NCBI GenBank assembly: GCA_030704615.1
Contig: JAKLZA010000038.1
Location: 1-25,000 of the forward strand
DNA: 25,000 nucleotides
Origin: Takakia lepidozioides
Taxonomy: Eukaryota; Plantae; Bryophyta
Direction of reading: 5' to 3'
The position numbers and the translations under genes were made by a program. Positions 1,985 through 21,389 of this stretch are shown in pieces (within the stretch, counting starts at the first letter, position 1; every line of letters begins with the position of its first letter). The notes beneath the pieces are model-generated. The model was not told the DNA's origin. It was given only the letters and a program-made list of their open reading frames with translations, and made no database searches.

Positions 1985-2469
1985 CAGCGTTTTTTTATTT
2001 TTATTTTTTATTTAACCAACAGGGACAGTGGCTTGGATTAAAAATGAGGAAAAAATAACCTCAAGCAACATACCATGAAGGTAGAGAAAGGGGACAATGC
2101 CCCGTGACCAAAATACGCAGGTTGCAGCAAAAATTAGGGATAGAATCTGCTATCTAAGAAAAGCCTCTAGATTATGGCGTTCCTACGCCTGGTAGCATTT
2201 GTTTTTTTGAAATTTGGAATTCATCACAAGTGGCTGCAGAAAGTAGACATACATTCTGTTCATCCACTGAAAGTAGGATAGAATCATCCATTTCCATACT
2301 TTAATCCATCTATATCATCCATATTAGGCAAATTTATCCATAATTGTTTTTAATTTGGAGAAGTTTGGCAATTTCATCCATGATAAAATAGGGAATTTGC
2401 AACAAAATATTCTATTTTATTTTTTTGAGGTTGAAATCTGACGAAAATTCATCAATAAAAAAAACGTTG
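1985..2469. mobile_element. Candidate non-autonomous TIR element (MITE-like)
   Basis: Imperfect terminal inverted repeats CAGCGTTTTTTTATT / AATAAAAAAAACGTTG. Several internal TCATCCA motifs. Flanks GGCCAAAGTT and GGCCAAATGC share 7 of 10 bases. Confidence 0.4.
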
Positions 2470-4367: not shown

Positions 4368-5460
4368 CATAGTCTTCTTGAAACAACTACTCACAAAAGA
4401 AATAAAGAAAGAGTTCCATGATAAACAAAGGAGTACTATTCCCCGCCGTAGTACCCTCTGGTTTGAAATTTTAATTTAAAAAAACCCAATAACAATACCT
4501 AGATTTTCAGTGGTATTGAAAAATAGATGGAGCTCCGCAGGCTGCAGAGAGGGGGACTGCGGGACTTAAGCTTTTTCTCGCTCCTTCGTGCTCCCTGGGC
4601 CTCGTCTTGCTGGTTTTGTTTACTATAATTTTCGTGTTGCATGCCAGGGTTTGGCATTCATAGTTGTGTTCAATTCGCTATCTTGCTTTCCGTTTTGGTT
4701 ATCCCGAAACCAATAGGGGTGATCTTTTTTCTCTCATGCTTTTCTGGCCTAGATTTTGGTTTAAGCTCCCTTCGCCTCAGTTCTAGGTGTTCTCTCCTTG
4801 ATTGTCTGGTTCTAGCACCAATGCTACTCTCTGGCTTGTCGCTGCTGGTCCCCTTGCGCTGAGTGGAGGGATAGGGAGCTCCTTTAAGGCAACTTGCTTG
4901 CATTAGTGTCTCAAGGGTGCCCTCAAGCTTATGCTGGATCCCCCTCCTCGATTTGATTCAATGACGGTCTGGAGCTGTGGCGTGGCGAGCTCTCGGGGTT
5001 GTGGCTGTTGGCAAGTGGCAGAGGGGAGTGTGTTTGCAGGTGTTCCGGGCCCTTCTTCAGCCGCGTTCTGTCTCACTGATCGGCCTCCTCCTGATGTAAA
5101 CCTAATCTCTTTAGTATTGCTTGCTTCGGTTCCTTCCATCGGTGCTCCGTCATTCAGGGTTTGCTCTCGAGCTTTGTGGTTTCTCAAGCTCCTCTTCTTA
5201 GGGTGCTTTGATCTGGCTTTGATCATCATGGATTTTTGGTGGTTTGTACCTCCCTTCTAGGGGATTTGCCTCTTCTGAGTAGCCCTTGTTCGTAATTTCC
5301 TTTGGGTGTCTCGTTTCTTTGTCAGGAATCCAAACTTAATTTTTTTGTTTCATTCTAGATTTCTCCCTTGGGCTGTTGCTGATTCCTAGCTTGGGGATTT
5401 GGAGCTTGGCTATCGCTGCTCTGTCGTCTGTTTCTGCTTTTGTCTCTGTGGGTTTCTACC

Positions 5461-7932
5461 ATGCAACTGTGGGGCAGTGTCATGGGTGGAAGAGGTCGTA
5501 GAGGACAGTTTCCCACTATGAGAGGGAAGGGAATAGGAGGACTTTGGGGATTCCTTTCGGGATCCTCGGGTGAAACCTCAACTTCTTCCTTGCAATCTAT
5601 GCTGGGCAAAGGCCGTTTTCATGTGGCTTCTCCCCCCATGTCGTCCGAGGTTGAGATCTGGCCGGAACCTTTGGATATCTTGGTCTCTGATGAGCCGATT
5701 CATCCCATTAACATGGAAACTGTCCGCTGTCAGACTTCTGAAATGCAAGCTATGGGGGTTCTTCTTCACTTTCCTGGTCGTCTGAAGGATCGAGATTGGG
5801 TTAGAGAGTGGGTCCATGATCATTTGGGGGGTGAGGGTCAGCTACACCAGCTCTTTTGTTTACCCATGGGCAGGGGTTTTTTTGCTGTCATGTTTGATTC
5901 TCAGGAAGCTGCGGCTAGGGCCTTGTCCTTTAATCCTTGCATGTCTGTTCACAAGGTCCATAAATTTCCTTGGTCCAAGGATTGGGGTCACAAAAATGGG
6001 GTTTTTTGTCGCCCTCGCATCATCTCTTTGCCTTTCCTTCCGTGTCAGTATCTAGCTTTCCTTCCTGAAATTGGCACTAGATTCGGTGACTATCTGGGCT
6101 GTTTGAGTATTTTTGACCTAGAAGCCACCAACTCCATGGTTGCGGAGTTGACAGGATGGGGTCCCCTTTCAAATATCAGTAGGATTGGGGATATTTTAGC
6201 CCCCAAGATAGTGGTGTTAATGCCCGTGTTGGCATTAGTTCCAAAAGCCATTAGGCTTCCTTCTCTTGTTGCTCCGTTTATTACTGTCGCCGTTTTCGAA
6301 GAGCAATTCTGCATGGTTTGTCATGGGTGTAATGGAGGAGGCCATTTTAAAGTTGATTGTCCTTTTTTGAAGAAAAAAAAGAGATGGCAACTACTGCTGC
6401 TGTGGTTCCCCCTGTCTCACTTCCCACTCCACCCCCTCCTCCCATCCCTCCTCTCTCCTCTCCTTTGCTCATGTTAGCCATTAATCGAATGGTTGTGTCT
6501 TCTTCCTCTCCGGGGCCTTCTTCTCCGTGTCCCTCAAAGAGACAAAGGACTCCGGCCAAGCCTGTTGGCAAGTCCCCTTCTCCCTCTCCCCGTAAGATTA
6601 CTCTTCCCCCCTCCGCCAACATCTCGCTCTTGGAAAAGGCTCTCCTGCCTCAAGTTTTCTCCATCTCTCATTTATGGAATCTACGGGTCCTAGTTTTCAG
6701 GACAGTCTGGCCTCTCGCTATCTTCGTCTTCGGTCCTTCAGTAATCTTCATTTGACCCCATGGTCTCCGGTTTCTGGGGTTAAAAAATGCAATGCCATCA
6801 TCTCTATCACCCCAATTGTGTTTCAGAAGGTCATGGGCTATCCTCAAATTCTGCTCACTGATCCGGTTTTGGGGCTGGCTACATCTTGGGTATCTCATGA
6901 TGATTTTTTAGAATTTCTTGGTCCGGAGCAAACTGTGGATCTGATCATAAAGAAAGTTCACTCTATTTTCTCCTTGAATTTGGGCTATTTGGCATTGAAT
7001 CCTGGGCTTACTTTGCACTTTGGTTCCTATTTGGTGGATAACTCCAAGCACTCTACTTTTTCCACGGTTCAAGTGTTGGTGGCTTTAGAACAGCGTGAAG
7101 TTACTAAGCCGGGGGAAAGTATTAGGGGTTGTTGGTCTAATGGCAGCTCTATCCCATCTGATTTGGCGGCTTTGATGGATCCTTCGGAGCTTGCGCTGGC
7201 CAGCAGGGCTTTGGATGATGGCTGCCTTCTCATCAATGCCATATCTACAAAAAAAAGCCAAGCTTAAAGGCAAACAATTGCTTATCGAGATGGACCCTGC
7301 TGATGGCAGCTCCCTAGGGGATTTTAATTCTTATTTGGGACCCTTTCAAGAGTTCCCCCCGACTCCAGCTGGGTCTTTGGCCCCGGTACCCCTTCTGGTT
7401 GCGGACTTCCCTCCTCTGGTAATCTTCTCCCCCCCCATCCTTTCCTCAGTGCCATGCGATGACAGTGTTGTTCTTGCTGCTTCAGTTCAGCCCTCCTCGG
7501 AGGACTCCTTGCTGGTCCTTTTTTTTTATTTCTGCTCCTCTATCCAAGAATCGTTGTCACCTTTTGGTCTCTTCCTGTGATAACAAATTTCTCCCCTCGT
7601 TGTATCTCTCTGAAAATGATCTTCTGCATCCTCGGGCCGTCATCTTTGACCTGGCCATCCTTTTGAGTCTTCCAATGGTGAACTTCAATATTTCTTTTTC
7701 TATTCGGAACAAGCTGCAATTTTATTTTTCTCAGTCAGACAAACCGAGAAGAGGCCCGTTGACGGTGGGTCATGTTCAGCTTCGGTTCCCTTCGCTTGTT
7801 TCTTCCTCCCTCTTTTTGTGGGTCTCTGTCCTTCCCTTTCATGATAAAAGAATTAAATTCAAGTTCTCTAAACCATTCAGGCCATCTCTTCAAGGTGACC
7901 CCTTGAGCCTGTTGATGGACAAACCCCCATGA
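5461..7932 (+). pseudogene. LINE ORF1 (DUF4283-like region, CX2CX4HX4C knuckle, long C-terminal extension), about 820 codons, frameshifted
   Basis: MGRGFFAVMFDSQEAAARAL...FPWSKDW resembles DUF4283 of plant LINE ORF1. CHGCNGGGHFKVDC is a zinc knuckle. Overlapping ORFs 5440-6477, 6357-6755, 6674-7267, 7191-7580 and 7459-7932 can be chained by single frameshifts, mostly at homopolymers. Its stop overlaps the ORF2 start (ATGA, 7929-7932). Confidence 0.8.
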
Positions 7933-10900
7933 ACCTTTCTCTCCATTCTTGGAATATCAGAGGTCTGGGCTCTGATTCTGTTGCCCCTAAGAGGACCACA
8001 TTAAAGCGCTGGATTTCTTCTCTTCCCCCCTCTCATTTTATTATCCTTCTTCAAGAACATAAATTAAACTCTGCCACAATTTCAACGCTTGGTAATCAAG
8101 TTTGGCCAGCTTCAGTGGCCTGGTGGAATCCTACCTATGAGGGCTCTCAGGGTGGATCTGCCATTCTTATCTCCCCTTCCCTTCTTCCGTTTGTGTCTTC
8201 GGTGGTTACCTGGATGGTGGGAAGAGTGTAGTGTATTTTTGTTAACACTCCCAACAATGCTGGGTTGCTTGGTATCATCAATGTTTATGCTCATAACTGC
8301 TCCTTGGAGCGAGCTCAACTTTGGTGCCTTATCAGATCTCAGGTTTTGGCCTTGTCTAATGTAGGGCACTGGATTCTTGCCGGGGATTTTAATATGGTGG
8401 AAAACCCATGTGATAGGTTAGCTTCAGAGTCCTCTGTGCTTTCTGTCTCTGAAGTGCATGAATGGGAAGCACTTACTCTCTCGGTGGGCCTTGCAGATAG
8501 TTACTCCTTCCCTCTTTCTCCTGCTTTTTCCTAGACCAACAATCGTAACCCACCAGGTCTGTGCATGGCGAGGCTCAACAGATTCTACTTCTCAGCATCT
8601 ATCTCCTCATGGTTTCATTATCTCCCCATGGGCCCAATCCTCTCTGATTTCGACCATGCAGAGGTTAGGGCCAAAGGTGGCCACGCCTGGAGTCAGGTCT
8701 AAAGGTAGATGGTTTACTAAGATTAACGTAAGTATCTTGAAAATTCCTTGGGTTCTAGAGGCCTTGAAAGCTTGCTGGTCCAGTTCTGCAGGCTTCTTCT
8801 CCTCCCCAACCCTTGGGTTTTTGAATAAGCTTCAGGCCTGTCATAAGCTTTGCATTTCTTTGGCCAGAGATCTTGCAGTTGAGAACAATAGACAGGAGCT
8901 GGCCTTGGTTAAATGTCTTTCGGTTTGTCAAAAGAAGATGGAAAGAAATCGGCATGGTCCCCAAACTTTGATCACTTATCAAGAGGCCAAACGTCGTCTT
9001 GGCCTGTTGCGAAAATCTAAAGACCTTTTTATGAAGATGAAAGCGGGGATCAACTGGTCTTTAAAGGGTGAAACGATGAGTAGGTATTTTTTCTTAAAGG
9101 CTAAACAACGTGGTGCGGCCCAGTCCATTCTCTCCCTTAAAGATGATTCAAACTGCTCTTGTTCTAATCCTAAGCGCATTAATTCCATTGCCAAGAGGTT
9201 CTTTAGGTCCTTGTATACTGCTGATCCTGATTCCCCTAGTATGAGGTTGGCCAGATCCTCTGTTTGTAGTAGAATCCCTGTCATTTTGTCCTCTGCTCAA
9301 GGAGAGAACTTAAACCTTCCCTTCTCTGAGATGGAATTAGCAGATACGTTGGCTGAACTTAAAGATCTTAAATCTCCAGGCATAGATGGCATGCCGACTG
9401 AGTTTTTCAAAGCCCTGTGGTCATCCATCTCATCTGACTTTTTGGCTTTGGCCAATGATATTTTGGCCAAAAACATTATGCCGTCGCAACTTTTCTCAAG
9501 GGGTCATTGCATTAATTTTTAAGAAAGGGGATATTGAGGACATTTCCAATTACCGCCCTATTACCTTGTTGAACGTGTCTTACAAAATCATTGCGAAGGC
9601 CTTGGCTCGGCGGTTGCAACTTCTTCTGCCCTCCCTTATTAGACCTGCCCAGTCTGGCTTTGTAAGGAAAAGGATGATTCTGGACAACATAATTCTCGCC
9701 AATGAGGCCTTGAGTTTTGCCGAAAAATCCAATCAACCTCTGGCTTTACTAATGCTGGATTTCGAAAAGGCTTTTGATCGAATTAACTGGAACTTTCTCA
9801 TTTTGGCGTTGCAGGGTGCGGGCATTCACTCTCAATTCCTTTCTTGGGTTCAAATACTTCTCTTCTCTGCCTCTAGTAGGGTTATGACTAACGGTTACCT
9901 CTCGAAATCATTTGCCCTTCAACGTTCTATTCGCCAGGGATGCCCTTTATCCCCTTTTCTTTTCCTGATTGCCGCAGACTATTTGGGTCACCTTATGGAC
10001 GCACAGCCAAACATTCTGGGTCTTCAAATTCCCTCCCCCTTTTTCTCCCATCCCTTCAATCTCACTTTGTCTATGTATGCCGATGACACGGACTTCTATC
10101 TACGAAATGACTTGCTTGCTAATATTGAGGCTGCTTTGAATACCTTGGACTGCCTGGTCTAAACTGGGCTAAATCTATTGGAATCCTTTCTAAACTTAGT
10201 AGTTCTTTTACGCATTTGCCTAACTGGGGTTTGGATAAGGGCTTGCGCTGGCTACGTGAGGGGGAATCGTGTAAGCTGCTCGGCCATCTGATTGGCCATG
10301 GCCTTTCTCAGCAAGATCGATTCTCTGATTGGCCATTTGATTGACTTTCTGGTGTTCTGCTCAACTGTCCATTGCAGGGAGGGCTTTGGTGGCCAACCAA
10401 CTGTCGGCGGCTATTTGGTTCATAGCCTCAGTCTGGGACCGGGCCCCAAGATTCTTCAATCTATTAAATCTTTGATTCGTAATTTCTTATGGGGTGCCTC
10501 TGATGCTATGATTGCTAGGCGTGCTTTGGTTTCATGGTCCTAGTTATGCCTTAAAAAAAACATGGGGGTCTTGGGATCTTGGACTTGGATAGAGAGATTA
10601 CGGCTTTACTTGGTAAGTGGATTCCCAGGGCCTTCCTGCCCCAGGCTGGTCCGTGGAAGTTCTTCTTTTGCCATAATATTCAGTGCTCAATTCCTGGTTC
10701 TAGTTTGTCATGGCCGTCACCCAGCTTTAGATGGCTGGTCCAGGGAGGCTCTAGAAACACCAAGCAATCTGTGGGTTCCTTGGCCTGGCAAGCCATATTG
10801 GAAAGCCTGGATTCGCCTTCGGGAGTTTCTATACCAAACCCCTCCCATATCTTGGGATGAGGCCCTCCGTCAGCCAATTTTTGGAAACATGCAGCTTAAC

Positions 10901-12153
10901 TGTGAGGTTTTGGCTAAATGCTCGGCTAGATGGGCTGCTTGGGAAAAGGCTGGGATCTCTTTGGTCAAGGATGTGTGGTCTGCCTCTGGTCTGGTCCCCC
11001 GGGAGCATTGGACAGGTAAAGTCCATCATATCTCTCTTATGACTGGTTGGCATTTTATTGCGACTGCCGTGACCCTGAGATGGTCTTCCCTCCTTACTTA
11101 GGGTAGAGATCAGTGGCAAACACCTGCCTGGAGGGGCTGCCTGGCTGGCATTCCTGTGAGTGCTATGTATGTTTCTGAGATCTGCAACAATGTGGCCATT
11201 GGTGTGGGTTTCGCTGCCAACTTGCTGGGCTCCTTGGTCTCCTTGGGTTACATGACTTGTCAGTTTGACTCCACTTTTGCGATCAGAGTCATTGATTCAG
11301 CTAGCACAATCAACCCTATTTACAATGGAGCAAGCACCATTCAACAATGGGGAGCTGCAATTTCAGTGTTTTGGTTTCTTAACATCCCCTTGGCACAGCT
11401 TCAATGGGACCCGGGAGAATGGACTTGGTGTGTGCAGGATAATACCAAGCCGTTTTTTGCTTACACTGCAAAATTAGGTTATAAGATCCTTCTCAATCCC
11501 TATCCCATTACTGCTAAGCTTTCTGCTAAATGGGCTCCCATCGTGGTTCCAGAAGTTGCTTGCATTTGGGTGGATGTTTGGAGAAAGCAACGGGCGGCAA
11601 AGGTTTCTGCCTTCTTGTGGAAATTGTGCAATCTTATCCTCCCTCTTTTCCTTTTCTCAACTGCCCCCTGATAATATTTGCAGATCTTGCAACTCTGGAG
11701 AGCCTGAGTCAATTCAACATTGCTTCATGACTTGTCCATTTGCTTCCTTATCTAGTTTAAGATTCATTCCCTATATGCTAACTGGCACAGCTTTGATCAC
11801 CAGGATCCCCTATTAATTCTGCTCAACTCTTCTTCTTCTTCCTGGGTTTCCTGTCAAGTTTGGGTGGCTCTCCGTGGCCTTGGCCCTTGGCATATTGGAA
11901 GAGCCGGTGTGCCTTCTTTTTTGATCATAAGCCAATCTGTGCCAAAGCCTCTTTGGCAGCCATCTTCTACGACTTATTGATTGAGGGTCGAAGACTTTGG
12001 GATGGGTTGCTGGTTTCAGTTGGCAGATGCTCTGAGGAGCGGGGGGCTACCCTTCTCTCGGAATTTGATGCCCAATGGGGGCACTCTGGACTTTTATGTG
12101 ACAGACAGGGAGAAAGAGTTCGGTGGGCACCCGGACCTCCAATCGACTGGTGA
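7929..12153 (+). pseudogene. LINE ORF2 (AP endonuclease, reverse transcriptase, zf-RVT), with stops and frameshifts
   Basis: EN: SWNIRGL, LLQEHK, INVYA, ILAGDFN, ARLNRFY, DH. RT: KSPGIDG, NYRPITLLNVSYKIIAK, LDFEKAFDRINW, IRQGCPLSPFLF, YADD. zf-RVT: KVSAFLWK...CRSC...ESIQHCFMTC. No RNase H seen. In-frame stops at about 8532, 10541 and 11099. Confidence 0.95.
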
Positions 12154-12280
12154 GTCTCCCAATCACTGGGCTTCTCCAGCAGAGGTGGAGGATCGCGACA
12201 TCAATTGGCGCCATAGGAAGAATCAAGAATCTAGTGTTAGAGCTCATCTGAATTTCGAGCCCCTTAGGGCAAAGCGTTGA
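12154..12280 (+). CDS. Candidate short LINE ORF3 peptide (ESPNHWASPAEVEDRDINWRHRKNQESSVRAHLNFEPLRAKR)
   Basis: +1 frame relative to ORF2, open from 11981. 14 of 28 residues are identical to the peptide at 14011-14094, and 9 of those 14 use different synonymous codons. Start codon unresolved. Confidence 0.55.
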
Positions 12281-12470
12281 ATTCATTATGTTTTTTTTTT
12301 TTTTTTACGGCCTCAGGATGTTGGCTCTGGTCTTTCATTGCTTGCAGGCCTGGTCTCCTGCCTTGCCACTGGGTTGGTTTCATGTTTTGACCTGGTTTTG
12401 TTTCCTGGCCTTCCTCTCTGTTCCTACAACATAGGAAGTTGGGCTGGTTCTTCAGACTCCAGCAGCTCGC

Positions 12471-12955
12471 TGGTATTTAGTTAGCCCTGTTGGATATGGT
12501 TGGATCTTTTGTTTTTGTCTCATTAGTGTTTTGCCACTCTCTTCTCGGCTGCACTACTCTGGGCAGACAGGCAGCTCTTTGCCTTTGGTCTTTTTTAGCT
12601 TATCTTTTGTTCTTTCCTGCAGTATCCTAGCGCATGGCTTCCTAACTTCTCAAGGCTCCTGAATTTTTAAATCCAGAAGCTTGCCCTTGTGGGCCTGGTA
12701 GGGTGTAACCCAATCTGGTTGGTATTTAGTTAGCCCTGTTGGTCCAGGTTGGATCTTATGTTTTTGCCTCTTTAGTGCTTTGCCACTTGGTTCTTGGCTG
12801 CACTTCTCTGGGCAGATTGGCAGCTCTTTGCCTCTGGCCTGTTTTTAGTTCTCTCCTGCAATATCCTAGAGCATGGCTTCCTGACTTCTCAGGGCTCCTT
12901 GATTTCTTAGTTAAAACGCTTGCCCTTGTGGGCCTGGTAGGGTGTTACCCAATCT
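12471..12955 (+). repeat. Diverged tandem duplication (~245 + ~236 bp) in the LINE 3' UTR
   Basis: TGGTATTTAGTTAGCCCTGTTGG ... GCTTGCCCTTGTGGGCCTGGTAGGGTGT(A/T)ACCCAATCT occurs at 12471-12716 and again at 12720-12955, with substitutions and one indel. Confidence 0.95.
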
Positions 12956-13048
12956 ACAATGATGTAAGCCTTATGGCCTTCTGTCCTGGTTATTTTTTCC
13001 AGGATTCCCCCCCTTTTTTAATACGATTTACAGGGCTTCCTCCCCTGT
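12937..13048 (+). other. Conserved multi-hairpin RNA element at the LINE 3' end
   Basis: Hairpins GGGT-GTT-ACCC, GCC-TTAT-GGC, TCCTGG-TTATTTTTT-CCAGGA (12984-13004) and ACAGGG...CCCTGT (13030-13048). Counterparts occur in the same order at 14414-14532 with compensatory changes. Confidence 0.7.
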
Positions 13049-13829
13049 TTGCTGTAAAAAAAAGAAAGAAAAAAGAAAAAAGAAGAAGATTGCAATATAG
13101 AAAAAAAAATCTAGTATCACTATTGCTAGTGTATTGAAAAATGTTTGAATTGGTGCACCCACAAACTCAATAGATCACTTTCAACATGTATTGATTTCAA
13201 TCGAAGTCAATACCAAATTCCAAGCGTAGTCACCCCACTATTTTGAGATCACCGGAATGTGTAGATCATTCAAACCGCTGTAGTTCTGTAGCTCAAGTGA
13301 GCAACTTTGAACTCTTCTCTTCCTGGTCAATATAACTTATAGCCGGTCTTTCCATATAGTGGATGCCCTCTATGCTATCTACGCTTCGGTGCTAATAAGA
13401 GGGGGTTGGTAGAATGTGAGCACACCGGTGAGCACAGGAAAACGTAGGTGTGAGCACAAAAACACAGCAATAGGGTACACATGTTTCCACGGAAATAGAA
13501 TTATCGCGAATAGGGTCCCGGAACAGCAAAAATATTAGTTGTGTGCCTATTTCTGTGCCTATCTCTGTCCCTAATTATGTCCCTAAACCCTAATGAAAAT
13601 AGGTATCCGTAATGTATATCTACAAACTCCAAGTTCCAAATATCTACATGTATGGTATCCTACCCAAAAAACACATTGGGAACAACAAACTCATAATAAC
13701 CAACACTATACAAGACACCCAAAAAACAAACAATTATTGAATGACTTAATATAATGAGGCAAACAACGGGATTCGGGATTCGGGATTCCTTAAATCCAAT
13801 GTCTATTTTTTAAAAACACTACCGAAATA

Positions 13830-14548
13830 AACCTGCTTAGTGAGGGAAGAAAAGCATGGGGAATCATGTTTGCAGCTGTTTCCAGAACTTCTGAACAAAG
13901 CGGGCGCAAGCTCCTCGATCGTTTTCTGCAGTCTTGGGGCAAAGACGACACTCTCGGCACCTATCAGCTTCCTGTCAGCTGGAAAAGCTCCATCCCCTGC
14001 GCATGGGATGTCCCCTGGTGAAGGGGAGGATGGTGATTTCAACTGGAGGCATAAGAAGGCGCGTACAACAAAGTTGAGGACTCAACTTCGTTTTTAGCTC
14101 AAGCTTGTCCAACTTCTTTAGGATGAGCTTTCTTTCTGGTTTTAGTTGTTTCTCTTACTCTGCCACTTTAGGATCATCTCGCTGCCTGGCTGTTTCCAGC
14201 CAGTTGTAGGATAACTCTCTCTTGGTTCAATATTCAGATCCATCTATCAGTTTAGAAAGACCAACCTTTCAGGCTTCTCGTTTTTCCACCTTGCAACGGG
14301 CCCTCATCCGCGAGGTTTTTCACAACCACCTTTACCCTTATCCTCGCTGTTCTCCAGCTCAAATCCCTGCTCGTCTCCTGCTTTTTCTATACAGCTAGTT
14401 TGCTCGGGCACTATGGGGATGTTCCCCCACGGTTAGCCTTCACGGCCTCCCTAGGTGGTTATTTTTTCCACCTTTTGTGACCTTTATTTTTTTTAATTAA
14501 TTTGAGTAAAAGGGCCTCCGACAGTCCCCTTTATTTAAAAAAAAAAAA
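13830..14548 (+). mobile_element. 5'-truncated LINE, a diverged relative of the 4529-13087 element
   Basis: Frame from 13833 reads LLSEGRKAWGIMFAAVSRTSEQSGRKLLDRFLQSWGKDDTLGTYQLPVSWKSSIPCAW, which aligns with the ORF2 end LLIEGRRLWDGLLVSVGRCSEERGATLLSEFDAQWGHSGLLCDRQGERVRWAPGPPIDW. Shared 3' hairpins. Poly(A) at 14537-14548. Confidence 0.9.
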
Positions 14549-15678
14549 CATTGCATCGCTAAAATCAATTAGGGAAGAAATCTCAATGCAATGACCTGCT
14601 AGAAAACCCCACGCCGAGTCCATCTTCGCGCTCATATCTTTCACCTGCCAAACAATTGCGCGCATCAAAGAAGACAACCTCCTCCTTCCAATCTCCCGGC
14701 AAATGTTGCAATTTACACCAGGTCCCCTGGATTCCACTGAGAATCGAAGGCACGCACATTCTACTTCTTAAGCATTAAGTTTGGGGTTAATATGAGGAAC
14801 TGTATCCATTTTAGCTGGGGCAATTATACTCCGGCCAGAGGGGTAAGAAGATTCGAACCCAAGGGCAGCTGCTGTATAGCCCAGTGGGAAGTGCCGTTAG
14901 GGTTTGGGGCGTGAGTAGCAACCCCTAATATGGTCACACGAGGGTTTGCTAGCCATGAGAAGCGACGCGAGCTCCATGTCTGCACTGATCGTTAGGCCGG
15001 TACGTGAGCCATGCTTGCATCCACACTAGACTCTGATTAGGGAAAGAGCAGACATTGCAGTGCAGGCCAGCACGTCCGTAGGCAGGAGGAGGTTGAAGCA
15101 GATCGGGACCACACAAGAGCAGACCTGCATCATCAGCAAAGCTTCATACATTGCGGGATCATGGAAAAGACCGTGTCCGCCTAGCATGTGTGCCTTTTCC
15201 TGCAAACTAGCGTGGGTCACTCATGGCCTTGGGTTGCTTAAGACATTGACTCACATTTAGAGATAGAGATCTCACAGTGATAAGCAGGCATCCGGGAGAG
15301 AGTGCGAGAGAGTGCTGGTTGACTGTGCCCGGCAAATGTGTGTTGTGAGAAAACCTTGATTCCATTGTCTACACGGGATAGTGACCATCGTGGAGTGGGG
15401 GGAGGGATTTGAATAAACCAGGGTTTTCTGTGTGCGTGTGCGTGTGTGTGTCCGAGGGAAAGGTAGAGCTATATTCATGGACTGTGCATAGTGAAGGGAA
15501 GTCTGAGGCGATACTCCTGGCAGATACTAGCTTGGTCCGGTGTTGGCGAACAGTCATGTCTTGTTCTCATCGACTGTGACTAGAGTTTTTGGCAAATAAT
15601 TTCCGCAGGATAGGAGGCCTGTTAGAACCAAGGGGTCGCCAATCTACCAGGTATCACACACACGAGGTGCAGTGCATA

Positions 15679-18600
15679 ATGTACGGGGGGCGATCATCGA
15701 GGAACGCGATGAGGGAGCGCGAGGCCTCAACTCATCATTTGGGCTCATCTCGAAGACACAACTTTACAAATTCGGAGAGGAGTGGCAGAGAACCCTATGC
15801 AGATCAGTATCCTAGAGACCATGGATACAGACAGGAGAGAGAAAGCCGAGTGGAAGAGTTAGGAGGCAAAGTCCGTGGTGACCACCAAGCAGGTCTTAGC
15901 AGTGACGTGACAATTAGAGAGGGAAGGGATGCGGGCGGGCTGTCAAAAGGTCGGAGGTCCAGGGATGATGAAAGGGGAAAAAGGAGTCGTTCAATTCCAG
16001 GAGACCACCACTTTGACCGTAGCCGTGGCTACAGTTATGGGTTTGATCGAGAGAGAAACCTTCCCGGTTTGGGTGGACAGAGTGTGCTTCGCGGCCGTTC
16101 ATCCGAGCCCCTTGAGAACAGCAGTTATCTCAAGGTAGCGGGTCTTATCTGTGATAGCAACAAGCGCGAAATCAACGATTGCTTCTGTCGCAGTGGGGTT
16201 TTCCATTTAAAGGTGGACAGAGTGCACCCTCGAATCTTGAGTCGGTTGTGTGAGGGAACCGACATTTTCTTATACGATCACCATTCAAGGGAGCTCCATG
16301 GATTGTTTGAGGTGGCAACCAGCGCTATGCTTCCTGATGGCTATGAAGGCTCGTACAATCAGTTTGCCGAGCAGGTATGTGTTCGTGTTTCACAGGAGTG
16401 TCTGCCTCTCCCGGAGCGGGAGTTTAAGGAAGCAATTGGAGAGAAGCATGACAGCTCTACCAATTTCAGCCGCGTTCTAACAAAAGATCAAGTGTCAAAC
16501 CTTCTCGAACTTTTCCGACCACTTTCTCGCGTCCCAAGAGGTGGCATAGACACACATCGGAACCCTCAGGTCCAACGCATTACAGGTAGCAGTCAGTCTG
16601 AGGGGCGGAATCGGGATATGATGAACACGGATAACTACTTAAATAGATCCAGCACATTCACTGATGAGTATCAGTCTGAAGCCAGACAAGAGGACTTTCG
16701 AAGAGGAGCCCGAAACTCTGACACACATAACTCCTCAAGAACCCGTCAGAGGAAGGACTGGATAGAGGAGGAAGATGAGCACAGCTCAGAAGATGATACC
16801 ACAGCAGCAACGCCACCGCCTACTGACAGTTACTCGAGGTTGCCGGCCACTTACCAACAGGTGAATAAAACAGAGGCAAGTTACCTTCCCTCAAGGAATT
16901 TTAGTGCAGGCAGAACAGGTCGTGCCACTGTTGGCAATGGTGGCGGTGCTGAGGGCAAGGAGTTTGAAAGGGAATGGAGTGGTGAGTGGGATGCTACAAG
17001 TTATGGGAGAAAGAGAGCCAGGGGCACTTCCTATGTGGACATGCCATCAAAAAGGAGTGCACGGGAGATCACGCCCCCCAGAGAATCCAGACGTGCACCT
17101 GCCCAGATTGTGACTGGACAGGTGTATGGGAGCTTCACTGAGGAAGTTGAGTCAAGCTATGAGAAGAAAGACAGAGGGAGAGGTGGGCGCTATATAGATT
17201 TGTTAGTCAGGAATGAGTCTGAAAGGGATCGGCGTGAGATCGCATCCCTTGGCCATTTCAGGCGCCCCCTCTCCCCAACAGTCACAAGGCGATCACATGA
17301 GAGGGGGGATGAAGAAGTAGAGGTTTACAGTGATGTGGAGGAAGAGGAAGAGGAAGAGGCCATTGCGGTGCAGAGTCATCTGGACCACCATTTTAAATCG
17401 TCCTATAAGCATCCAGATGTCACCACCGTGTTTGACCACCCCCAGCAGGACCTTCTCTTGAATAATCAAGTGAGGTCATTTGAGAATGGGATTGTTAGGG
17501 AAAGATCTGGGAAGAAAGTGCACTCTTGGTCGGGTAGAAGAGAGTATGCAAGCCTCCCCACAAATGCAAGAGTATTTTATTCTCAGCAAGAAGCTTCAGG
17601 TTTCATTCCCAAGGCTGTGTCAAAAGATGGTTATGCAGTGGACTATAATGAGCATGCTTGCATGGTTCCCCAGCATGCTGTAGAGAATGGCCAGCTGCGC
17701 GCTGCCCATACCTTGATCTCACATGTTGACCCAAACTTCCGCAGTTCCAAAAATTTTCAACCCCAGGGAAGTTTGACAGTTACTGTCCGTAATGATATCC
17801 GACGACACAATGTATCTAACCTGCTGAAAAGGCATACTTCAGTCCAAGATAGAATTGGTCCACCAGCAGTTCCTGCTAGACCAATGAAGGGTTTCATTGG
17901 AGCGAGGGAGGTTCAGGACCCCTCCTTCCAAGTCACGCTTTCTGGCAATCTCAAGAGGACCGTGAAGGTCCATGAAACAGAGACCAGCAAGGATCTGGAC
18001 GTAGTGGACAGATCCTATGCATGGGAGCCGAGCCGTTCTGTTCGAGGTGTGTCAGCAGAATCTACTGAAGACCCCTTGGAGGATCAGGTTCACCCAAGTG
18101 GCAAGAGGAAGAGTGCATTCCTGCGTCTTTCAAAACCTCATGACACTAGGAATCAAAGTCTTGATGGCAGATTGAGTAGGCCAGTCTTCAGTCGACTGGG
18201 AACAAGAATTTTACCTCGTTCAAGTGCCAAGGCTTATGCTGTCCCTGAAAACAGAGCCTTCTCAAAGAAACTGAGGAAGGGCACGGTTTACAACAAGGAT
18301 ATGGATGAATTAGAACTGGCCGGGCAAGAAGAGAGGGCAAACCGGATCTTTGGTGAGGAGGATTTGCCAGGTGTGGATGGAGTGAATGTGGACTTCAAGG
18401 ATGGGGCTTTTGTGGTGGATTTCATGGGGCCAAGTTTTGGAAGAAGGTCTCTTCGAGGTAAGAAGGATGCTGAATGTGCTGGGAGTGGAGAAGAAATTGG
18501 GTGCCTCTCTGAGAGGGAGAATGGGCATGGCCAGATTGGTAACCGTAGAAAGCTCGTTCGACCTTCAATCAACAGGGGTATTCAATCTTCAAATGAAAAA

Positions 18601-18729
18601 GCAGAGCAGCAAAACTGTAATGCAGATAATGAGCCCGACAATATAGACAGATTGCCAGCAAACCCCACTCCTTCAGGCATGGAGATTGAATCTTCAACAC
18701 AAGCGCCCTTGGAGTTGCCAGCGGTGTAA
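15679..18729 (+). CDS. DCD (Development and Cell Death) domain-containing protein, about 1016 aa, apparently one coding exon
   Basis: Uninterrupted ORF (frame open from 15589, first ATG 15679, plausible acceptor TTCCGCAG ending 15608). About 16135-16520 reads AGLIC..N...DCF...VFHL...EGTDIFLYDHHSRELHGLFEVAT...FAEQV.VR...CLPLPEREFKEAI...F...LTKDQVSNLLELF, the DCD pattern. The rest is low-complexity R/S/E/D-rich sequence with a basic RRKLVRP motif. Confidence 0.88.
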   Translation: MYGGRSSRNAMREREASTHHLGSSRRHNFTNSERSGREPYADQYPRDHGYRQERESRVEELGGKVRGDHQAGLSSDVTIREGRDAGGLSKGRRSRDDERGKRSRSIPGDHHFDRSRGYSYGFDRERNLPGLGGQSVLRGRSSEPLENSSYLKVAGLICDSNKREINDCFCRSGVFHLKVDRVHPRILSRLCEGTDIFLYDHHSRELHGLFEVATSAMLPDGYEGSYNQFAEQVCVRVSQECLPLPEREFKEAIGEKHDSSTNFSRVLTKDQVSNLLELFRPLSRVPRGGIDTHRNPQVQRITGSSQSEGRNRDMMNTDNYLNRSSTFTDEYQSEARQEDFRRGARNSDTHNSSRTRQRKDWIEEEDEHSSEDDTTAATPPPTDSYSRLPATYQQVNKTEASYLPSRNFSAGRTGRATVGNGGGAEGKEFEREWSGEWDATSYGRKRARGTSYVDMPSKRSAREITPPRESRRAPAQIVTGQVYGSFTEEVESSYEKKDRGRGGRYIDLLVRNESERDRREIASLGHFRRPLSPTVTRRSHERGDEEVEVYSDVEEEEEEEAIAVQSHLDHHFKSSYKHPDVTTVFDHPQQDLLLNNQVRSFENGIVRERSGKKVHSWSGRREYASLPTNARVFYSQQEASGFIPKAVSKDGYAVDYNEHACMVPQHAVENGQLRAAHTLISHVDPNFRSSKNFQPQGSLTVTVRNDIRRHNVSNLLKRHTSVQDRIGPPAVPARPMKGFIGAREVQDPSFQVTLSGNLKRTVKVHETETSKDLDVVDRSYAWEPSRSVRGVSAESTEDPLEDQVHPSGKRKSAFLRLSKPHDTRNQSLDGRLSRPVFSRLGTRILPRSSAKAYAVPENRAFSKKLRKGTVYNKDMDELELAGQEERANRIFGEEDLPGVDGVNVDFKDGAFVVDFMGPSFGRRSLRGKKDAECAGSGEEIGCLSERENGHGQIGNRRKLVRPSINRGIQSSNEKAEQQNCNADNEPDNIDRLPANPTPSGMEIESSTQAPLELPAV

Positions 18730-19295: not shown

Positions 19296-21389
19296 TCGAC
19301 AATTTTGCCTTTTCTGCACAATATCAAATGACACTGGCAGAGAGGAGAGTTTGGTTCATCTGTCCCAGGTGAAATGCTGTAAACTCGTCGCGATGAGTGG
19401 ATTGCAAGTAGCGAGTCCTTTTCAATCAGTGGATGGGAGTTTCTTGGAACACCTGGACTGCAGGAGCAATCCCAACTCTCAAGAGTGACTTGCCTGTATT
19501 GATGTATGAATGACGAAGATCGATGCTCTCCTTTTGAATGTGTAATACCTGCCCGTGTACCTGTCAAATGCCTCTGCCAGTAGCCATATGGGCACTGTGG
19601 TGCCTTCGTTGTGAGCAAATGTCGTGCTGCTTTGGTAGTTCATTTTGCTGTCTTAACAAGTTTTGGTGCAATGGTAAGCAAAACAGATACTCTAGTGCTT
19701 CTCTTCCATATACTGAAATCAGGATCATTTTCTACATCAATGATTTTTGCCAGAAGCTTCTCCTCTTCAGGCACAGGGCTGCCTGTTGGAAGTTTTGTCC
19801 GCTGGGTTGTCTCCGGTTCACAGTGATCAATGCAGGCTTTTTAGGTCTCAAGCCGTATTTCACTCAACACTTCCACAAATAAATGGTGTAGGATTGTGGC
19901 ATCCATGGGCTTCCTCTCACCAGCAGTTCTTAACATCCTGGGTTGTGAAAAGCTTGTTTCCAAGTGATGGCTTCCAATTCGGGAGATTCACCAACTTTAT
20001 ACAGTTGTTGTGCAACTGGTTGGGAGGCCAGGTTTCTGGGAATGGGAACCAGGGAAGCAGTTCAAGGTGTTGTACTGCCATACTGCAATTTGATTTCAGT
20101 GGGAGAGTCCTGGTCTCGAGGCGGTGGAGGTTTCACTGCTGCAAATGTTCTGAAGATGGTGAATGTAGGTGAGCCTTGCACCAGCAGCGGGCTACTGGAA
20201 TAAGTAACTCAAAAGCAAGGCAACTGCTATACGGAAGGGTGGGAATTGAAGACCCTTGAAGTTCATGGATCAGACTCAATTTCAAGGAAACACCCCTCTG
20301 ACACAAATAAATCAGCTCAGTAATTGACTGTTTTGCATGTGCAAAGACAATTACTTGGTATATCTATCACCTAACTACTCTGCTTCTTCTAGAACTGCCA
20401 CTTTATGATGAAATATCCAACAAACCTCAACTGCTGTACCACTCAGTCATGTGGGTTTCTAATCCTATCAACTGGGGGTTTATATGTTGTTGGATGCTTT
20501 TCTCAATTTGTGGTCCTGGCTGTGAGGGGGACTTCTGGACCCCTGAGGTGTTAGGGAAAGGTGGAGGGGAGACAAGGAAAGGAAATTCTGTCTACTGTAA
20601 TACATGCAAGGTTAAGGTTTCTCTTATGTCCAGTGGAATTACAGAGGCTCCTGCCCACCCCAGAGCCCAAGGTCGGTTGAAGGCACATGTAGAAGGATTG
20701 AACACGGGATGAAGGCACAAGCATGCAACCTCTAAGCTGTCTGCACACATAAAGAGTGCAGGTTTTGAGCCACGCTGTGCGATATTTGATATTGGTTTAA
20801 CTGGAAGTTTTCCATTTGTAGCCAGCCTTGTTGACTTAGCAAACGGGCTGCAAGTTGTTCATAAACCCTTCTCAACCTGCAAACTCTGGAACCTTTCAAA
20901 CTCTAGAAAAAGATTCGCAGCACCTTGAAGAGATTGAAGTAAAAGCTGTGGGTTTCCATGTTAGAAAATTTAATTTTTTTTTGATTAACAATGCTCAAGG
21001 TTAGCACTGTCTTGACTTGCTGATTTCTTCTTCATAAATTCTGAACTCATTGACAAGATCACTTTGATGAACTGAGTTTGCCTGTTCAATGATCTACCTA
21101 CCCTGCTGGTGCAATAAACTTTGTTTGCAAATCAGTTTTATTGCATTTGGAAGTTACATCTGTGGTGTATTTACAACGCCATATAAATCAGTATTGTCAA
21201 ACAATTGCAAGGATCACCTCTGCCCTATACTTGGAAAGCGCCTGGCCTGTCTTGTGAGTTCTAAGTTGGCCAAGTTTAGTGTCACAGTTGGTATCCAAGG
21301 TTACAGTTTCTTTGTCCCTATCTAGGGACCGGTTGGTTTCAAATCAACACAACACTCCAATGTTCAGTACTCTGTGAAGGAGCCGACTA

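Follow-up and report, generated by a model that had tools for sequence, protein, structure and literature searches.

A putative +1-frame coding tail behind the ORF2 stop codon of an old plant L1-type LINE clade, and its possible expression by ribosomal frameshifting at UGA

A stop codon can act as an effective slow A-site codon, and UCC_UGA, the site used by most antizymes, and GCG_UGA_C of yeast, for which intrinsic frameshifting of 37% is given, are effective +1 frameshift sites (PMC5009743). Among retroelements, the yeast LTR elements Ty1 (CUU_AGG_C) and Ty3 (GCG_AGU_U) shift into the +1 frame at a slow, rare sense codon and thereby join gag and pol. Non-standard decoding is also found in non-LTR retrotransposons, namely in the frameshift within HeT-A gag and in the stop/start coupling of ORF1 and ORF2 of LINEs (PMC5009743), and primate L1 carries with ORF0 a short coding region beyond ORF1 and ORF2, which is antisense, located in the 5′ UTR and primate-specific (PMC5203782). 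LINE ORF2 itself is treated as a single plain frame terminated by its stop codon, and neither a coding tail nor a recoding event after LINE ORF2 was described in the reviews and surveys examined.

Here, we report on two LINE 3′ ends in the window (the whole stretch of 25,000 nucleotides that was analysed) in which the sequence following the ORF2 stop codon appears to encode a short tail in the +1 frame. Similar to antizyme (OAZ; UCC_UGA, in yeast GCG_UGA_C), the 0-frame of the LINE ends at UGA and is followed by a +1 frame whose first codon is GAN; the proposed shift would likewise need no re-pairing in the P site and would use the stop as a slow A-site codon (PMC5009743). Unlike in antizyme, the P-site codon is UGG or CUU, no downstream stimulator was found when predicted folds were compared to shuffles, the host is a plant retrotransposon, and the part that the predicted shift would reach is a short tail and not the main body of the protein. 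With Ty1 and Ty3 the locus would share a retroelement +1 shift at a slow codon, and one relative (L001, see below) has CUU before the stop; in contrast to the gag-pol join at rare sense codons, the shift would here lie after the reverse transcriptase (RT), at the end of ORF2 of a non-LTR element. HeT-A and the ORF1/ORF2 coupling are comparable as cases of non-standard decoding in non-LTR elements, but concern gag or the ORF1-ORF2 junction and not the region downstream of ORF2. Compared to ORF0, also a short additional L1 coding region, the tail is in sense orientation, lies 3′ of ORF2 and is common to deeply diverged plant lineages.

The source stretch is plant DNA and contains, at 15589-18729, a 1046-codon ORF whose product has a plant DCD domain (development and cell death; E 6e-21), a probable host gene located next to the LINEs. 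LINE copy 1 (5440-13110, forward strand) was delimited by Pfam domains and the ORF listing and is a decayed full-length L1-type element. It comprises, all on the forward strand, an ORF1-like part (5440-6477), an endonuclease (7929-8231; Pfam Exo_endo_phos, E 8.2e-7, above the cut-off), an RT (9386-10162; RVT_1, E 3.7e-28) and a zf-RVT domain (11556-11816) that is weak in this decayed copy (E 0.001, 20.1 bits compared to a cut-off of 27.5); in the nearest relatives, the layout is Exo_endo_phos, RVT_1 and zf-RVT. The APE-type endonuclease N-terminal to the RT in ORF2 and the RT itself assign copy 1 to the L1 clade, as does the A-rich 3′ end without LTRs, in which, in both copies, an A-run follows a shared terminal motif. 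According to the ORF list, ORF2 of copy 1 is fragmented into many pieces. Its final 100 codons (11851-12153, forward strand, frame 0) are, on translation, homologous to copy 2 and to a public relative (P0005, see below) in frame 0 only, and this frame (phase 11851) ends with V-R-W-A-P-G-P-P-I-D-W and a TGA at 12151-12153, so that the motif W-x4-P-x2-W (12124-12150) stands directly before the stop. The 3′ UTR (12281-13110, forward strand) holds a tandem duplication of ~249 nt, the terminal motif (12987-13001) and the poly(A), the A-rich end being located near 13059-13110. Within the duplication (12466-12955), 12466-12625 pairs with 12715-12874 (79% identity) and 12598-12716 with 12837-12955 (84% identity); other copies skip it, as contig joints 12210>12870 and 12266>12935 indicate.

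Copy 2 is the 5′-truncated 3′ end of a very different LINE (about 13797-14545). Its ORF2 C-terminal fragment (13797-14021, forward strand, frame 0), recognized by translation and alignment to copy 1, ends in phase 13800 with V-S-W-K-S-S-I-P-C-A-W-D-V-P-W and a TGA at 14019-14021; here, W-x4-P-x2-W (13980-14006) is followed by the four codons D-V-P-W and then by the stop. The 3′ UTR with poly(A) (14098-14545, forward strand) includes the terminal motif (14456-14470) and an A-run at 14531-14542. This 15-nt motif, TGGTTATTTTTTCCA, is identical near the 3′ termini of both LINEs, and the two 3′ UTRs cannot be aligned except near the 3′ terminus. A variant of TGGTTATTTTTTCCA with two mismatches at 2047-2061 (reverse strand) could indicate a third LINE 3′ end, a short one. 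A further, heavily decayed LINE 3′ end possibly lies at 20442-20772 (forward strand; shuffle P 0.009), where 20442-20564 (phase 20382) resembles the ORF2 C-terminus and 20683-20772 (phase 20380, corresponding to +1) resembles the tail, its conserved W codon now being TGA. We regard this possible third copy as weak and left it out of the independent support.

In both copies, homology in the ORF2 frame extends to W-x4-P-x2-W and TGA, and from there on similarity is found in the +1 frame alone. The original prediction had described this arrangement, two LINE 3′ ends with ORF2 ending in V.W....P..W and TGA and a +1 peptide behind it, and both the sequence and the three-frame translations agree with it. 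The +1 frame of copy 1 (phase 11852) is open from 11981 to a TGA at 12278-12280; counted from the stop, the tail (12152-12280, forward strand) has 42 codons and that TGA, and it contains the conserved core peptide at 12173-12256. In copy 2, the tail (14020-14097, forward strand) has 25 codons from the stop and a TAG at 14095-14097, and a similar peptide is found in the +1 frame at 14011-14094, the similarity reaching back to 14011, or to 13993 under an alternative alignment. The layout of the tails (25-42 codons) is an acidic start, a core D-[IF]-N-W-[RK]-H-x-K and a basic end. A recount of 12173-12256 against 14011-14094 gave the same 14 identical residues out of 28 as originally claimed, 9 of the 14 being encoded by different codons. 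When each peptide was searched with tblastn over the whole window, the other peptide was recovered (E ~1e-7), and nothing comparable was found outside the two tails.

The two copies allow the constraint on ORF2 and on the tail to be compared frame by frame. Over the last 57 codons of ORF2, they are identical at 44% of the nucleotides and 37% of the amino acids (pN 0.50, pS 0.73), with a pN/pS of 0.69 in frame 0 and of 1.15-1.37 in the other frames. Over 28 tail codons, identity is 60% for nucleotides and 50% for amino acids (pN 0.31, pS 0.77), and pN/pS is 0.40 in the +1 frame compared to 1.53-1.67 in the other frames. The tail is more conserved than the ORF2 codons preceding it, and the constraint switches from frame 0 to +1 at the ORF2 stop (TGA 12151-12153, TGA 14019-14021 and, in the relative L001, 1392-1394). 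Compared to shuffles, the similarity of the tails was significant (P 0.002-0.005): column shuffles gave at least 14 identities in 0.5% of trials and reached the BLOSUM score of 80 in none of 20000, and when copy 1 was mutated at random, again with 34 changes, 14 identities were reached in 0.18% of trials. The other two forward frames and the three reverse frames produced far lower scores or stops; an antisense ORF was rejected, the reverse frames holding stops or having low identity. By translation and alignment, the +1 frames upstream of the junction are unrelated between copies 1 and 2, which suggests that +1 coding begins near the stop and does not belong to a long overlapping ORF starting far upstream. 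Because synonymous sites are saturated, an unselected or untranslated tail should have been randomised and no longer be recognisable.

An alternative explanation is that the tail is a cis-acting RNA or DNA element, serving for example RT recognition or RNA stability, which is untranslated and whose codon-like pattern is incidental. This would be in line with the tail holding the best-kept nucleotides of the 3′ region among subfamilies, the 3′ terminus apart, and with its retention, along with the 3′ UTR, in an internally deleted element (L003, see below). We nevertheless consider a cis element unlikely, as the nucleotide differences between the two peptides concentrate on third positions of the +1 frame (9/8/17 for the three codon positions), an arginine of the tail is conserved through CGC versus AGG, pN/pS is 0.40 in +1 and above 1.5 elsewhere, and the frame is uninterrupted in the two copies as well as in the two public relatives. 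In addition, the downstream RNA of the three lineages did not fold better than shuffles (z 0.14, 0.67 and -0.04), an outcome that also speaks against a stable RNA structure and provides no sign of a stimulatory element for frameshifting.

Relatives outside the window were rare. A profile of the ORF2 C-terminus searched against 1.84e9 representatives yielded one true relative (P0005) and four spurious tandem-repeat proteins. The latter were the top matches (P0001-P0004, with 22, 14, 7 and 6 matched stretches) and are long tandem-repeat translations unrelated to LINEs, an artefact illustrating how a profile built from two sequences can go astray when the C-terminus is of low complexity. A word search with the 99-aa +1 ORF had no matches, one with the C-terminus alignment returned P0005 itself only, and no locus was confirmed from two metagenome scans (tail alignment and C-terminus alignment) or from one viral scan. 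The 466 matches of an RT search were, besides P0006, distant L1s; the loci L005-L008 taken from them are without the C-terminal module, and some appear to be animal. With the large searches nearly blank, only three or four tail lineages were collected.

The two informative relatives are from public Logan contigs: P0005 (L001/L002) and P0006 (L003/L004). The ORF2 C-terminus of P0005, a distant relative, contains W-x4-P-x2-W, followed by nine further codons and a TGA stop, and in the +1 frame after this stop a tail-like V-E-G-G-D-V-N-F-H-H is encoded (shuffle P 0.003). P0006, the closest RT relative (58% identity), stems from an element with an internal deletion that has fused part of the RT in frame with the tail, and the fusion was called as one gene. 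Its tail reads S-P-E-F-D-K-S-D-I-N-W-K-H-V-K, followed by a basic end, shows codon-periodic conservation and has a pN/pS of 0.47 and 0.77 compared to copies 1 and 2, respectively. The three good tails (copies 1 and 2 and L003/L004) have the core S-P-x-E ... D-[IF]-N-W-[RK]-H-x-K in common and are conserved on first and second codon positions. In L003:1780-2523, which is identical in L004, the RT fragment ends ~30 residues past the FADD box and the tail follows; the end of the L003 3′ UTR resembles that of copy 1. The L003 element may represent a non-autonomous derivative in which the tail and the 3′ region have been retained.

The single gene call across the RT fragment and tail of L003/L004 would also be expected if the tail were the last exon of a shorter product, derived by splicing or deletion, in which an upstream part of ORF2 is joined to it in frame. 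We give this explanation little credit, since copy 1 has no GT at the site matching the left breakpoint of L003, no acceptor before the tail is conserved in copies 1, 2 or L001, and the runs presumed to be RNA (see below) have no specific joint before the tail, their contigs crossing the junction colinearly; an in-frame join has a one-in-three chance. Splicing at a GTGAGT...CAG of copy 1 was rejected as well, this stretch being 30 nt long, a multiple of three, and absent from copy 2.

Contigs of two DNA runs and two runs presumed to be RNA, all from the same species, were aligned to 11400-14600 at 80% likeness. Contigs of paralogs with a likeness of 80% or more extend across 12017-12210 and across 14000-14097 with no gap in the alignment. 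Among the variants listed, there are no indels in 12024-12280 or 13968-14097, with similarly supported indels being listed elsewhere, and no variant at all at 12146-12156. All three of the differences listed behind the stop among copy 1 paralogs (12157, 12166 and 12178) are synonymous in the +1 frame. Consensuses of loose contig ends just before 14003 and 14004 have W-x4-P-x2-W in register with other intervening residues, suggesting that the ORF2 frame is preserved as far as the junction in further subfamilies (two were seen). The summed contig depth, a rough measure, was higher in the junction and tail bins than in most adjoining ORF2 and UTR bins. Judging from these paralogs, the +1 phase is a family trait and not private decay.

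As a side observation from the same alignments, the terminal bins of the LINEs (12898-13004 and 14396-14502) had some of the highest depths of the whole aligned stretch, exceeded only by the repeat bin 13540-13646 in one DNA run. This bin belongs to a very high-copy repeat (13326-13860) located between the two LINEs, with degenerate CCCTAAA telomere-like units near 13560-13600; other copies of the repeat have a CCCTAAA insertion at 13580.

The paralogs bear on a further explanation, in which the tail is the former in-frame end of ORF2, severed by a frameshift and without function in dead copies that were possibly moved in trans. Copy 1 is indeed heavily decayed, with ORF2 in many pieces, and one T inserted before a GAR codon automatically creates TGA. 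However, the +1 phase is common to lineages whose ORF2 C-termini are only ~37% identical, and to the paralogs of each; at a pS of ~0.77, a dead tail would not have retained 50% identity, an open frame and a low pN, and its constraint would not exceed that of the preceding ORF2 codons. A severed, functionless ORF2 end is very unlikely for these reasons. The same contigs do not sustain the reconstruction of a stop/start ancestor TGG-TGATG-TCYCC, as neither junction has a well-supported one-base indel; W-x4-P-x2-W in the ORF2 frame and the TGA stop are conserved as they stand. Neither of the two outcomes named beforehand as speaking against the prediction, a tail in frame with ORF2 in other copies or a dN/dS near 1, was observed. 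Taken together, the proposal that a peptide is selected in the +1 frame fared well: the frame-specific pN/pS, the arginine kept through CGC and AGG, the third lineage with the core and the phase common to the paralogs make protein-type selection on the tail in the +1 frame well supported as a reading of these comparisons.

How ribosomes would enter the +1 frame is less firmly indicated. Between the second W of the motif and the E-D of the core lie 37 nt in copy 1, 19 nt in copy 2 and 52 nt in L001, in each case 1 modulo 3. The linker contains 18-nt repeat units (12155-12172/12173-12190 in copy 1 and 13993-14010/14011-14028 in copy 2), and these permit two ways of aligning copies 1 and 2 and prevent the exact shift point from being pinned down. 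TGG TGA is homologous between the copies provided that copy 2 gained its extra unit through a duplication specific to its lineage. From reading the sequence, TGG TGA G in copy 1 (12148-12154, forward strand) and TGG TGA A in copy 2 (14016-14022, forward strand), with the same hexamer, are candidate +1 shift sites; in copy 1, omission of the T of TGA brings GAG into frame with the tail. The ORF2 stop is TGA in all three lineages, within TGG TGA R in both copies of the window and within CTT TGA T, which is similar to +1 sites already known, in L001. This comparison covers three lineages with an ambiguous linker alignment. The first +1 codon is accordingly GAG, GAA or GAT.

In the proposed mechanism, the stretch after the ORF2 stop would be the coding tail, in the +1 frame, of an old plant L1-type LINE clade. 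A share of the ribosomes, stalled when the UGA stop occupies the A site, would pass over its U and take GAR or GAU as the next codon, and these +1-shifted ribosomes would add the tail to the C-terminus of ORF2p. The tRNA-Trp bound to UGG is unable to re-pair in the +1 frame (GGU), which would require a shift that does not depend on slippage in the P site. The different shift site of L001 counts against this mechanism. We know of no plant cellular mRNA for which such +1 frameshifting is established. Ribosome hopping from UGG to UGG was rejected, as it fits copy 1 only, and so was transcriptional slippage, there being no homopolymer run in common.

The original prediction had named two routes, reinitiation or a +1 extension of ORF2, of which the extension fits better and is favoured, though no more than that, while reinitiation fits poorly, with no +1 ATG near the stop in copy 1 and L001. 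A conserved AUG near the stop in the +1 frame was looked for in the three lineages and found in copy 2 only, where an ATG at 14008-14010 lies 11 nt upstream of the ORF2 stop. Together with the translational coupling of ORF1 and ORF2 known in LINEs (PMC5009743), this ATG would suit a third ORF, that is a separate small peptide not fused to ORF2p and made by termination-reinitiation, leaky scanning or non-AUG initiation. Copy 1, however, has no +1 ATG within 80 nt upstream of the stop or in the tail, and L001 has none from the preceding +1 stop to the tail; the linker just past the stop already shows synonymous differences only in +1, and the extra T required for a UGAUG overlap is present in no listed paralog variant. 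An unfused peptide is therefore an improbable source of the selection on the tail.

Compared to a separate peptide, an extension of ORF2p is the reading we prefer. We infer from the nucleotide comparisons that the tail is translated, joined to ORF2p and reached by a shift at UGA. That antizyme-like +1 ribosomal frameshifting at UGA appends the tail to the C-terminus of ORF2 seems to us about as probable as all other readings combined. Slightly more doubtful is the wider proposition that plant L1 LINEs of one ancient clade depend on a programmed +1 ribosomal shift at the UGA of ORF2, which would add a conserved acidic-then-basic tail to ORF2p. As a guess, the tail could act as a basic extension for nucleic-acid binding or nuclear import.

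The claim about the junction can be tested with a short reporter. If it is true, no recoding event at the end of a LINE ORF2 would have been described before, as far as our literature search shows, and the protein would be annotated too short in all copies by present pipelines. A natural and testable +1 recoding signal would become available in plants, a rare plant case of a +1 shift at a stop codon. If part of the ORF2p carries a frameshift-dependent tail, the element would have an extra functional part and a built-in control over the amount of this part.
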